From: Octopus bimaculoides
Lineage: Eukaryota
DNA length: 64,000 nucleotides
Assembly: GCF_001194135.2 (NCBI RefSeq)
Contig: NC_068992.1
Coordinates: 932,415-996,414 of the forward strand
Reading direction: 5' to 3'
Under the pieces are notes generated by a model that was given only the letters and a program-made list of their open reading frames with translations, was not told the DNA's origin and ran no database searches. A program made the position numbers and the translations under genes. Shown piece after piece: positions 1-39,375 of this stretch (position 1 is the first letter of the stretch; each line of letters opens with the position of its first letter).

Positions 1-201
1 TAGAAAGCATTTTTTTTCTTCATGATCTTTGACAACTATATCTGGTCTATTTGCCTTAATTTCTCTATCTGTGTGTATTGGCATATCCCAGAGTATGGTT
101 GCTTTCTCGTTTTCTGTGACCTTTTCTGGCGTGTGTTTATACCATCTTTTTTCTGTTGTTATTCCATAATGTTGGCATAGCTTCCAGTGTATATAGGTCC
201 C
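1..201 (-). mobile_element. R4/Dong-clade non-LTR retrotransposon fragment (REL endonuclease region), 5'-truncated, continues off the window edge
   Basis: Manual minus-strand translation from 201 gives GTYIHWKLCQHYGITTEKRWYKHTPEKVTENEKATILWDMPIHTDREIKANRPDIVVKDHEEKKCFL. This has the IHW..C / W.H.P / ILWD..I.TDR / RPDI motifs of R2/R4-type restriction-like endonucleases. The 5' end abuts (TAA)n. Confidence 0.9.
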
Positions 202-317
202 ATTATTATTATTATTATTATTATTATTATTATTATTATTATTATTATTATTATTATTATTATTATTATTATTATTATTATCATTATCATTATTATTATT
301 ATTATTATTATTATTAT
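202..317. repeat. (ATT/TAA)n microsatellite abutting Dong-like fragment
   Basis: Direct reading; two ATC interruptions. Confidence 0.98.
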
Positions 318-1521
318 CTCATTGTTGTGAAGATTATTGCCAATATACTAGCGGGGTAAACTACGACATTTCCTTTGTGTTTGTGCATTATTAAATACTT
401 CATCCATTTCTTTCGTTATGTATGTGTTTAGTGTTCGCTACTAGGATATGTAACCCTTCTTTCCGCTGGAAGCGCCAAAGTTCGCAGTCAATAAAATTAT
501 TCGAAATATTTCACTCGTAATTGTATTTTATTCCAATGAATGTTCATAGAGTATGCAATTTCATAACATCGAGTAATAAATATACGCATATATATATATA
601 TACGCATATNNNNNNNNNNNNNNNNNNNNNNNNNNNNNNNNNNNNNNNNNNNNNNNNNNNNNNNNNNNNNNNNNNNNNNNNNNNNNNNNNNNNNNNNNNN
701 NNNNNNNNNNNNNNNNNNNNNNNNNNNNNNNNNNNNNNNNNNNNNNNNNNNNNNNNNNNNNNNNNNNNNNNNNNNNNNNNNNNNNNNNNNNNNNNNNNNN
801 NNNNNNNNNNNNNNNNNNNNNNNNNNNNNNNNNNNNNNNNNNNNNNNNNNNNNNNNNNNNNNNNNNNNNNNNNNNNNNNNNNNNNNNNNNNNNNNNNNNN
901 NNNNNNNNNNNATATATATATATATATATATACGAACATATCAATTCATATACATACATGTATACGATACGAAATACAAACCTGGTGCTCCAGCATGATC
1001 GTTGCCCTAAGGCTGGAATTAATACAAAGAATAAAAGCAAAAATACATTTCTTTGTATCTATTTATTTCTCATTATATACGTATATCATTCATACATATA
1101 CATACACGCATACACAAACACACATACACACACACACAGACGCGAGCGCACTTACATACATATGGCACTGAGTTAATTCTCTTATTTCATTTTTGTTTAA
1201 ATTATACATGTGCACGTGTGTGCGCGCTTGCGCTCGTGTGAGAATATCATAAATATACAAGATCGCTTGGAGGCAGAAAAAGTAAAACATAATATATGAA
1301 CTATGAAAGCCAATAATGTCAATGAGAAATGTATATCTTGGAGGATGAGGAGTGAGAGGCTGTCAATGAGGGAGTACTTAATATATTTTGTCATATAAAC
1401 GTTTATTTCTAGATATAAGTGTACCTGAGTTTTAGTGTACGAAACCGTAGGCTTCGAAATTAGTAAGTTAATATATTCTCTCCGTATCTTTTATTTATAA
1501 CTCTATTAACTTACCGTCTTT

Positions 1522-1606
1522 TACTACTACTACTACTACTACTACTACTACTACTACTACTACTACTACTACTACTACTACTGCTGCTGCTGCTGCTGAT
1601 GATGAT
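1522..1606. repeat. Compound microsatellite (TAC)n(TGC)n(TGA)n
   Basis: Direct reading. Confidence 0.97.
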
Positions 1607-1631
1607 AAAAATATTGAGTTAGCAAATAGCG

Positions 1632-1675
1632 TTTATTGCTTACTCTTTCACTCGTTTCAGACATGCTGGAGCACC
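1632..1675 (-). mobile_element. Isolated 3' tail of SINE family B (or of its partner LINE)
   Basis: Reverse complement GGTGCTCCAGCATGTCTGAAACGAGTGAAAGAGTAAGCAATAAA matches the tail motif at 35435-35488 and 59517-59578. Confidence 0.55.
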
Positions 1676-36562: not shown

Positions 36563-36623
36563 ATGGAAACCACAATATGTGCAGTTTTATTTATCAGTTA
36601 TTTGTTTCATGGATGTCAGTACA
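36563..36623 (+). CDS. Candidate first coding exon encoding a signal peptide (unknown secreted or membrane protein)
   Basis: AAAATGG start, METTICAVLFISYLFHGCQY (hydrophobic core), then a phase-1 donor CA|GTAAGC. An upstream in-frame ATG at 36542 adds MKRKEKK. No homology recognised and no downstream exon confirmed. Confidence 0.3.
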
Positions 36624-37819
36624 GTAAGCAAAATGTAGTCAAGGCTCCATTGCAAAGTAAAATGATTTCCTTTTCCTTGAATATCAATTTACACCTCTCC
36701 TTTTTTATTACATTTTGGAACCGAGAAACCTATCTATCTATCTATCTATCTATCTATCTATCTATCTATCTATCTATCTATCTATCTATCTATCTATCTA
36801 TCTACCTGTGTATCTCAGTAACTAGCTACTTGTATAGCTCTCTGTCCGTCTGTCTGTCTGTCTGTCTGTCTGTCTATATGTCTCTCTCTCTCTCTCTCTC
36901 TCTCTCTCTCTCTCTATATATATATATATATATATATATATATATCGGGGGTTATTTAAATCCAGGAAATCGCCTCACAGGTGCGAATTTGCCATTCTAT
37001 AAAGATGACCCACAATTATCATCATTTAATTAATATATCAAAGCGTATATCGACTGTGGATAATTGTGAGAAACTACTGCTTGATAAACAAGGACAATGC
37101 ATTTGCAAAAATTTAACGCCGGTGTGTAAGAGCGCTATTTCTAATTCAGCAGGGACCTAAACAGTGTTACTGGATGGATAAAATCAGCGATATCTACCAT
37201 GTATGACAAATCCGATTTTCACCGAAATATTAAAACGAAATGCTTAACATTAAAATGCAAATAGACATGTAAAAAGGTATCTGCTCTTTTTGCCAATTCA
37301 TCCGTCATCCACCTCACCCTAAATAACTGATATAAATCATTGTCTTTTCTTAAGGAAAGTATACGTATTTCAGCCATAGATTAGTGTCGTGGATTATGGC
37401 AATCTTGGAAGAAATCTGGTGTTTATCCAGGTTCCCATTCATATTGGGAGCTGGCAGACTTCAGCTGCATAATTGACTAACACGGAAGTAGTATCAAATT
37501 TACAAGTTTTCGTTTCACTCGTAAATAATATTGGAACATGTTCAATTACCATTTCATAATATCACGCATCCAGCACTGGAGATTTGTATGTAACAATACC
37601 CAGAACCCGAATGTACGCTTTTGTAATTTCTTCGTTAAATTGCAGTTTAGTAGTAGAAGAAAATTTTCCTCTATAGGGTCTTCCATAAGCATATCTTTAC
37701 TTGTAAATACTGAAACACTAAAACCTGTATCATGATTTTCTTTCTTATGTACACACTTTCATTATAAGGTACAAATACGTAAATACACACATAAATACAC
37801 ACCCTTTTGATACGCCTCG

Positions 37820-38226
37820 CTGACCTTGACGTTCCTTTCTCTGTGTAGAATGTCATCCAGCTCCAAAATCCCTAAATATCAATACCCACTACCGTCGGAG
37901 TCAACCATGGTCTCTCCTGATGGTAACCGCAATCCTCTGCAAGGCTGATTTCTTCCCACATTTCATATAAGTACTGAGCAAAGCTTTTTCTGTAAGATGT
38001 CATTTAAGTTTTCCATCCCACCATACTTCTCTTCAGGAAACACGTTACATTATTTGCAATTCCAAACAGATCTAAGCACCATTAGTTCACGAATGTGGAA
38101 TCATGTCAAAAGCTTTGCAACAGTCAATCCAGGCTAGTCCCAGATTTGTTCTCCTTTGTTTACAATCTTGCATTTACGTTTTGTTAATGAATATTTGATC
38201 TTTGGTACCTCTGCATCTCCTTCTAT
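37820..38226 (-). mobile_element. R4/Dong-clade reverse transcriptase fragment, decayed and internally deleted
   Basis: [44 protein letters not shown], then WCLDLFGIANNVTCFLKRSMVGWKT, joined to GLRLPSGETMVDSDGSGY*YLGILELDDIL. Matches R4/Dong RT motifs G.RGTKDQL / AWIDYKKAFD..PHSW / YKYLGI.E. Confidence 0.85.
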
Positions 38227-38823
38227 AGAGACCTCAAGAGACAACAAATTAGAAGTTCATGTAGGTGTTATGCCTAGGGTACCATATATTTGAATTTGTA
38301 CTGTGTTGTTCTAGATAATGTTTAAAAATTTGAGATCACATAGACAGTATTTTACGTAGGATATGGGCAGTTCCCATGAGCACTATCTTTTGCACTTCAA
38401 CCATTTTGGGGTTTCCTGGTATCGGAGCTAGGTAGTAATCATCCCGTTTCGCTGTCATTCCCAGGACATCTATGACAATAGGTATTGTTTTCGTCTTCAG
38501 ATTCCACATTTTGCTAATTTCTATTTCAAGATCTTTATATTTGCTCAGTTTTTGGTAGGTCTTGACAGATACGTTTATATCGATTGGGACAGTCATATCA
38601 ATGAGGAGGCATGCTTTTTATCTGAAGTCTTTCAGTATGATGTCTGGCCTATTTGCATCTATCTTTCTGTCAGTTTGAATGGTGAAGTTCCAGAGGAGTG
38701 CGATGTGATCATTTTCAAGTACTGGGGGTGGTTTGTGTTCCCACCAGTTTTTATTATGGGGCAAGTCCAAGTTTTTGCAAATTACCCAGTGAATATATTG
38801 TGAAGCTCTATCATGCCTGTTGA
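38227..38823 (-). mobile_element. R4/Dong-clade retrotransposon 3' end (REL endonuclease, stop codon and ~110 nt 3' UTR)
   Basis: NRHDRASQYIHWVICKNLDLPHNKNWWEHKPPPVLENDHIALLWNFTIQTDRKIDANRPDIILKDFR*KACLLIDMTVPIDINVSVKTYQKLSKYKDLEIEISKMWNLKTKTIPIVIDVLGM...MGTAHILRKILSM* with one premature stop. The 5' side runs into an N-gap followed by (TAA)n. Confidence 0.92.
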
Positions 38824-39297
38824 NNNNNNNNNNNNNNNNNNNNNNNNNNNNNNNNNNNNNNNNNNNNNNNNNNNNNNNNNNNNNNNNNNNNNNNNNNNNN
38901 NNNNNNNNNNNNNNNNNNNNNNNNNNNNNNNNNNNNNNNNNNNNNNNNNNNNNNNNNNNNNNNNNNNNNNNNNNNNNNNNNNNNNNNNNNNNNNNNNNNN
39001 NNNNNNNNNNNNNNNNNNNNNNNNNNNNNNNNNNNNNNNNNNNNNNNNNNNNNNNNNNNNNNNNNNNNNNNNNNNNNNNNNNNNNNNNNNNNNNNNNNNN
39101 NNNNNNNNNNNNNNNNNNNNNNNNNNNNNNNNNNNNNNNNNNNNNNNNNNNNNNNNNNNNNNNNNNNNNNNNNNNNNNNNNNNNNNNNNNNNNNNNNNNN
39201 NNNNNNNNNNNNNNNNNNNNNNNNNNNNNNNNNNNNNNNNNNNNNNNNNNNNNNNNNNNNNNNNNNNNNNNNNNNNNNNNNNNNNNNNNNNNNNNNN

Positions 39298-39375
39298 TTA
39301 TTATTATTATTATTATTATTATTATTATTATTATTATTATTATTATTATTATTATTATTATTATTATTATTATTA
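39298..39375. repeat. (TTA/TAA)n microsatellite
   Basis: Direct reading; lies 5' (sense strand) of the Dong-like element across the gap. Confidence 0.98.

Follow-up and report, generated by a model that had tools for sequence, protein, structure and literature searches.

Short Dong-lineage retrotransposon relics beside (TAA)n microsatellites in a 64-kb window of the Octopus bimaculoides genome

Introduction

In a stretch of 64,000 nucleotides of the genome of Octopus bimaculoides (assembly GCF_001194135.2, contig NC_068992.1, positions 932,415 to 996,414 of the forward strand; the whole stretch is called the window below), three pieces of long interspersed nuclear elements (LINEs) of the type that carries a restriction-like endonuclease (RLE) lie with a (TAA)n microsatellite on the 5' side of their sense strand. 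The question raised by this locus is whether the microsatellite served as the target of insertion, whether it was made by the elements themselves, or whether the two came together by misassembly or by chance. A sequence-only reading had assigned the pieces to the R4/Dong group of retrotransposons and had proposed that they belong to a large family targeting TAA repeats. The Dong element of the silkworm Bombyx mori is said to have been reported by Xiong and Eickbush in 1993.

Targeting of (TAA)n by Dong has been published for insects, molluscs and cnidarians (PMC3812793, PMC7998251), the TAA-targeting elements listed including those of silkworm, mosquito and the snail Biomphalaria (PMC3812793). 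The analysis described here examines the fragments and their junctions in the window, the same junctions in related elements, and the identity of the encoded protein.

Results

Dong fragments and TAA tracts in the window

The fragments were found by translation, by tblastn with related elements and by a hidden Markov model (HMM) of the protein family. They are given here with the tracts and the assembly gap that adjoin them (RT, reverse transcriptase; UTR, untranslated region).

1-201, minus strand: Dong fragment 1, first half of the RLE with the RPD motif (family HMM positions 994-1063, E 8e-25)
202-315, minus strand: (TAA)n of 26 + 9 perfect units with a short interruption, abutting the sense-strand 5' end of fragment 1 (201/202)
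6905-6934, plus strand: (AAT)10, abutting the 5' end of fragment 2 (6934/6935)
6935-7131, plus strand: Dong fragment 2, linker and CCHC knuckle (HMM positions 915-980, E 2e-20)
38339-38823, minus strand: Dong fragment 3, last 161 codons, RLE and C-terminal helices (HMM positions 990-1152, E 4e-55)
38242-38338, minus strand: stop codon of fragment 3 (38336-38338) and 3'UTR remnant of ~95 nt
38824-39297: run of 474 N (assembly gap) separating fragment 3 from the (TAA)n presumed to belong to it
39298-39375, minus strand: (TAA)26, 5' of fragment 3 in its sense orientation, beginning exactly at the gap edge
37801-38241, minus strand: Dong fragment 4, RT region (HMM positions 524-603 and 698-758, E 7e-15)
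33630-34247, minus strand: Dong N-terminal relic, old and degenerate (HMM positions 198-406, E 8e-11)

All three fragment-side tracts read TAA on the sense strand of their own fragment and stand on its 5' side. Coordinates and strand thus agree with the earlier description of TAA 5' of all three loci, directly abutting at two of them and lying across a run of N at the third, where position and the strand of the repeat are the only ties between fragment 3 and (TAA)26. Such tracts are scarce: perfect AAT/TAA runs of at least five units comprise these three and a single five-unit run at 39804-39818, about 430 bp beyond the third tract. Perfect simple sequence repeats (SSRs) total 2788 bp in the window (about 4.5%), of which AAT/TAA accounts for 213 bp; no Dong fragment adjoins (AT)n, (AC)n or (ACT)n, although each is commoner than AAT. 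When five fragments were placed at random, two or more abutments occurred in 0 of 2,000,000 trials, and three or more fragments fell within 500 bp of a tract in 18 of 2,000,000. The adjacency of TAA and Dong in the window is therefore non-random and strand-specific. Almost no other long TAA tract is available in the window to which its CR1, RTE, mariner or short interspersed nuclear element (SINE) copies could be anchored.

The junctions fall at different positions of the open reading frame (HMM about 915, about 994 and before 990), and the three junction fragments belong to different subfamilies and share no DNA similarity, for which reasons they represent three separate insertions. The (AAT)10 beside fragment 2 is the last part of a compound microsatellite at 6797-6934, in which (TAC)n is followed by (ATG)n with mixtures of ATA and ATG and then by (AAT)10, the only part that touches the fragment.

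Fragment 1 is an open frame, truncated at its 5' end and continuing past the window start, and its minus-strand translation runs without stops as GTYIHWKLCQHYG...ILWDMPIHTDREIKANRPDIVVKDHEEKKCFL. Fragment 2 is also open and is truncated at both ends; its plus-strand translation from 6935 reads ...GFLITAQDQSFPTRNYQKHIMKRNITSNCRICGDGQETINH, and its homology fades between 7131 and 7149, the remainder of the element downstream of the knuckle being found neither by the family HMM nor by self-BLAST of the window. Fragment 3, whose 5' side meets the gap 38824-39297, contains a single in-frame stop (38618-38620) and an Asp in place of a nearly invariant Gly. Since tblastn and the family HMM both return exactly three pieces of the CCHC/endonuclease region in the window, in agreement with the sequence and the translations, the three RLE-type loci of one protein family that had been proposed stand as such. 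Two of their ends had been set differently: the second locus is where it was placed, with homology reaching 7131 (and fading by 7149) rather than 7121, and the third likewise, except that its former end at 38227 lies ~15 nt inside fragment 4, the 3'UTR remnant extending to about 38242.

The TAA rule in related elements

The junctions of related elements were examined in 83 loci from a coral genome and from host-associated metagenome contigs. For the 3' side, 53 loci were usable, in which the C-terminus was present and followed by 200 nt or more of sequence; a control window was set 700-960 nt downstream. A tract of (TAA)4 or more was present 40-300 nt after the stop codon in 30 of the 53 loci, the opposite orientation (TTA) in 1, and (TAA)4 or more in the control window in 0 of 29 loci; most of the other 23 loci have degenerate TAA-like repeats at the same position. 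The relatives terminate in (TAA)n some 60-150 nt past the stop codon. For the 5' side, 47 homology boundaries inside contigs were used, ranging from about codon 330 to about codon 1080, and (TAA)4 or more stood just upstream of 22 of them, in many cases abutting, with TTA at 2. Perfect TAA tracts at both ends were observed in 7 of 30 loci. Because the relatives show the same strand-specific TAA at their 3' ends and at their 5' truncations, the pattern in the window, in which a variable 5' truncation point is joined to sense-strand TAA, is the normal signature of the family. The proposal of TAA targeting accordingly gains from two sides, the placement statistics in the window and the strand-specific TAA at both ends of the relatives.

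Head-to-tail copies and the junction of fragments 3 and 4

Fragment 4 directly follows the 3'UTR of fragment 3 on the same strand, and their junction, at about 38241/38242, contains no TAA. Fragment 4 is internally deleted (HMM 603 to 698) and interrupted by several stops, and its RT-region match lies at 38090-38224 on the minus strand. Among the relatives, a same-strand, 5'-truncated Dong copy occurs within 450 nt after 8 of 64 C-terminal ends, with TAA between the copies in 5 of these pairs. As head-to-tail pairs with intervening TAA are common in the relatives, fragments 3 and 4 are likeliest to stem from two insertions, one after the other, into the same tract and a small deletion thereafter; template jumping and misassembly are less likely origins of this junction. 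Two other arrangements were seen in the relatives. In L002, a CR1/Jockey-like RT (6788-7100) stands after the TAA tract that follows the Dong copy, and in L083 (950-1190), the 3'UTR is broken inside the hairpin described below and runs into a second Dong C-terminal fragment before TAA.

In many of the relatives (L001, L004, L006, L013, L017, L025, L030, L033, L034, L043, L054 and others), the 3'UTR contains a short hairpin of the form CC(C)WAGG-stem-loop-stem-CYCGG, some 25-45 nt past the stop codon, whose inner stem shows compensatory changes. Seven pairs are predicted, 4 of them with two-sided changes, and 89.7% of the cells are paired, as compared with 79% in shuffles; the covariation score was reached by 0 of 500 shuffles, in a test that is biased by the selection of the sequences by eye. 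The 3'UTR of fragment 3 appears shortened, and this hairpin is reduced in it to the 5' half (CCCTAGG), at about 38272-38283 of the window on the minus strand.

The N-terminal relic at 33630-34247 is bounded by SINE-like sequence and microsatellites, with no TAA tract nearby and no informative junction.

The protein is of the RLE type

Fragment 3 has its best database match in an O. bimaculoides protein (A0A0L8FXY1, 89% identical), and the relatives number 14,716 cluster representatives at E ≤0.001. The full-length relatives comprise 1100-1220 amino acids, and the domain retained in fragment 3 corresponds to their extreme C-terminus. RVT_1 is present in the full-length relatives (E 1e-27 to 3e-31), which also match the R2 proteins in PDB (E 5e-28), and Exo_endo_phos, the Pfam match expected of an apurinic/apyrimidinic endonuclease (APE), was absent from the four full-length relatives searched, the window copies being truncated. 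The knuckle of fragment 2, C-RI-C-GDGQETIN-H, has the spacing CX2CX8H, with the final Cys shifted (H-x5-C) where the homology ends; in the relatives it is complete, as CRxC-x8-H-x4-C. A CCHC knuckle between the RT and the endonuclease is described for RLE-type LINEs as CX2-3CX7-8HX4C (PMC5678591). RPD, (L/I)ID and K-x2-KYK are found in fragment 3 and RPD in fragment 1, and in alignments this motif coincides with the catalytic one of the R2 RLE.

AlphaFold, given an alignment of 120 homologues, produced a model of the C-terminal domain with a pLDDT of 92.4. Its top structural matches are the R2 proteins of silkworm, zebra finch and turtle (probability 1.00; query-normalised TM 0.63-0.67), followed by other PD-(D/E)XK nucleases. 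A single-sequence search of PDB with the C-terminal 279 amino acids returned no match, a 7-sequence profile gave marginal R2 matches (E 0.015-0.034), and the hits of the window peptides in Pfam, zf-RVT and DUF5620, all stayed below threshold. With an RT, no APE match, similarity to R2, the RLE motif and fold, and a CX2CX8H knuckle, the earlier assignment to the RLE type is correct, the knuckle, the RPD...D...K motif and the R2 endonuclease as best structural match being among its grounds.

The fragments belong to the Dong lineage

Supplement S5B of PMC5678591 supplied reference sequences, spanning RT to knuckle, for placement among the RLE clades. Six full-length relatives have their highest scores with Bombyx Dong and mosquito DongAa, at 370-540 bits and 35-45% identity across some 600 amino acids; R4 gives 227-260 bits, and R2, R8, HERO, NeSL and Utopia give ≤155 bits. 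Of the window peptides, the knuckle of fragment 2 has Bombyx Dong as its best reference (E 3e-13) and the RT region of fragment 4 has DongAa (E 1e-10), their next-best references reaching only about 1e-4. In a neighbour-joining tree the family groups with Dong (64% support) inside the R4 clade (84%), with insect Dong nested among the relatives; one relative, P0190, groups with Bombyx and Aedes Dong at 100% bootstrap. Judged by these bit scores, peptide matches and the tree, the placement of the window fragments in the Dong lineage of the R4 clade, as originally suggested, is confirmed by comparison with published references.

More than one subfamily is represented. In the stretch of protein common to fragments 1 and 3, identity is only about 42-45%, and at the DNA level the two show no similarity, so that at least two divergent subfamilies must be present; fragment 1 is 65-68% identical to cnidarian-type relatives and about 42% identical to the octopus protein that matches fragment 3.

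Outside the regions retained in the TAA-anchored copies, a diverged N-terminal Myb/SANT-like domain, detected by HHpred, has been described for the Dong lineage (PMC7998251), and an HDV-like self-cleaving ribozyme at the 5' end of its elements (PMC3774820). No N-terminal Pfam domain was found in the full-length relatives at E ≤0.01, and the TAA-anchored window copies stop short of the N-terminus; a scan of the window with Rfam returned no family, all window copies being 5'-truncated.

Assembly gaps and local context

The window is rich in gaps, with 14 runs of N, most of them flanked by microsatellites. The gaps at 610-911, 2142-2151, 3106-3536, 7500-7815, 8574-8583 and 16946-17093 touch no fragment or TAA tract, and since these six miss them, only the gap at 38824-39297 is relevant here. 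Microsatellites, namely (TA)n, (CT)n or (TTA)n, border the gaps at 610-911, 7500-7815, 35693-35750 and 38824-39297 on at least one side; it is evidently within such repeats that the assembler broke off, and the lengths of the gaps are estimates only. Exact-protein look-up with an octopus protein (P0001) and with an 86-amino-acid open reading frame of the window retrieved no other assembly of the locus. A local duplication of 230 bp with 97.8% identity (39524-39753 and 40141-40370) was also noted, the copy nearer the Dong locus being preceded on the minus strand by (TAA)4...(TAA)5(AAG)17 at 39754-39841.

Discussion

The results described above make it highly probable that the fragments are dead, 5'-truncated Dong copies of at least two subfamilies that were inserted into (TAA)n microsatellites by target-primed reverse transcription. 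They are relics, properly annotated as LINE/Dong-R4 relics in (TAA)n, and not genes.

Referring to the R2 element, with which the family shares homology, and to the published work on Dong, we infer the biochemical steps and the part of the protein that reads TAA as follows. The Dong protein would recognise (TAA)n DNA and nick its TTA strand. The 3' end of the element RNA, that is, a 3'UTR ending in or next to (UAA)n, would then pair with the nicked strand and be copied from that primer. Reverse transcription would usually end early, leaving a variable internal start joined to the upstream TAA. Priming and early termination of this kind would place TAA on the sense strand and on both sides of a copy, and the ends of the relatives show a strand bias (30:1 and 22:2) in keeping with priming through base pairing. 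A candidate reader of the target is the N-terminal Myb/SANT-like region (PMC7998251).

Several observations weigh against this interpretation. TAA on both sides is seen for none of the window copies: fragment 1 runs past the window start, the 3' part of fragment 2 is missing, and fragment 3, which alone retains a 3' end (at about 38242), meets another Dong fragment there with no intervening TAA. An unresolved gap separates fragment 3 from (TAA)26, and two further Dong fragments (37801-38241 and 33630-34247) have no adjoining TAA. The relatives were sampled from short host-associated metagenome contigs, not from octopus, and their 5' boundaries, being taken from tblastn, are imprecise. The neighbour-joining support for the grouping with Dong is just 64% (84% with R4).

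The alternative that survives best regards the TAA tracts as products of the elements, namely, the 3' tails of upstream Dong copies that were lost or have become unrecognisable, or expansions seeded by such tails, so that the arrangement would reflect tandem accumulation and not targeting by the endonuclease. The relatives do end in (TAA)n about 60-150 nt past the stop codon, 5 of 64 C-terminal ends are followed by a second Dong copy, head to tail, with TAA in between, and fragments 3 and 4 form such a head-to-tail pair. However, the sequence upstream of each of the three tracts in the window gives no match to the family HMM, and these flanks are unique; by self-BLAST, neither the flanks of the tracts nor the sequence after fragment 2 is repeated elsewhere in the window. 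The tract beside fragment 2, moreover, closes a compound (TAC)n/(ATG)n/(AAT)n microsatellite, a structure that a Dong tail would not generate, and published work treats TAA as the target (PMC3812793, PMC7998251). As a replacement for insertion into pre-existing tracts this explanation is unlikely, although the two are compatible, since a tail can become the next target. The accompanying suggestion of the sequence-only reading that the elements may seed or extend the tracts is plausible for the 3' tail only.

Misjoining of repeat and microsatellite contigs by a short-read assembler would also bring the two sequences together. The richness of the assembly in microsatellite-flanked gaps (14 runs of N), the start of the fragment 3 tract at a gap edge and the odd junction of fragments 3 and 4 without TAA would all suit such an artefact; the junctions 201/202 and 6934/6935, however, lie within uninterrupted sequence, and the same strand rule and junction type recur in independent assemblies of other animals, which makes this explanation very improbable. 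Still less credence can be given to elements of another RLE clade with microsatellite specificity, despite the targeting of microsatellites by some HERO families and by the NeSL-related Togen (PMC4640811) and the inability of Pfam alone to separate RLE clades: the HERO, NeSL and Utopia references reach ≤155 bits and Dong 370-540, the E values of the window peptides are 3e-13 and 1e-10 for Dong and only about 1e-4 for the best other reference, and the tree agrees. The HERO clade, considered by itself, was rejected, its references scoring 73-103 bits against 370-540 for Dong and forming a separate branch in the tree. Chance adjacency in a microsatellite-rich genome, with perfect SSRs at about 4.5% of the window, is refuted by the random-placement trials, AAT being a minor SSR (213 bp), the observed abutments arising in 0 of 2,000,000 trials and the same pattern recurring in the relatives.

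The proposed insertion into (TAA)n by target-primed reverse transcription is worth comparing with what is known of other elements. Dong of Bombyx mori, DongAg of Anopheles and DongBg of Biomphalaria glabrata resemble the window family in their single open reading frame, RT, CCHC knuckle, C-terminal RLE and insertion into (TAA)n, whereas the window copies are short, dead, 5'-truncated relics of at least two divergent octopus subfamilies. R4 of Ascaris and Parascaris has the clade and the RT/CCHC/RLE layout in common with the window family and is its second-best reference (227-260 bits), but it inserts at a 28S rDNA site instead of into a microsatellite. R2 (Bombyx mori, zebra finch and turtle, with cryo-EM structures) serves as the mechanistic model for target-primed reverse transcription, having a homologous RT (E 5e-28), an RLE fold at TM 0.63-0.67 and an aligned PD..D..K motif; it differs in belonging to another clade, in its N-terminal zinc fingers and Myb domain, and in its 28S rDNA target. 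Waldo, Mino, Kibi and Koshi of the R1 clade and the NeSL-related Togen ((TG)n) use, as Dong does, a microsatellite as a harmless multicopy target (PMC3812793, PMC4640811), but with other repeat units and, in the R1 clade, another endonuclease (APE). The idea of a safe target, likewise, is standard (PMC4640811).

According to three papers (PMC9115989, PMC13282606, PMC8967140), Dong-R4 LINEs are abundant in cephalopods and octopus genomes have been annotated with them, a full-length Dong consensus is held in the O. bimaculoides repeat library, and O. vulgaris has 5 Dong families with 1129 recent insertions; the TAA target is not discussed in the passages of these papers found by term search. The annotated families share host genus and clade with the window fragments, which are most likely members of them, and the earlier expectation of a large family agrees with the same published annotations.

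The pair of fragments 3 and 4, with no TAA left between them, and the head-to-tail pairs in the relatives suggest that elements insert repeatedly into one tract in a fixed orientation. Combined with templated (TAA)n tails, such insertion might make the co-existing octopus Dong subfamilies major creators and remodellers of TAA microsatellites in cephalopods and not just passive users of them, with the covarying 3'UTR hairpin of the relatives (CCWAGG-stem-CYCGG) as an RNA handle recognised by the protein. We regard this extension as doubtful.

The TAA-targeting Dong system is already described, and the finding in the window is ordinary biology for octopus and other molluscs, of little importance beyond correct annotation. 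Elements of the Dong type are natural, sequence-specific "safe-harbour" inserters related to R2, now engineered for gene insertion, and are relevant to the mutual shaping of LINEs and microsatellites; the dead copies in the window advance neither of these subjects. Altogether, the target-site rule of insects, snails and cnidarians can be read from a single 64 kb window of an octopus genome, and several diverged Dong subfamilies have kept the TAA rule.

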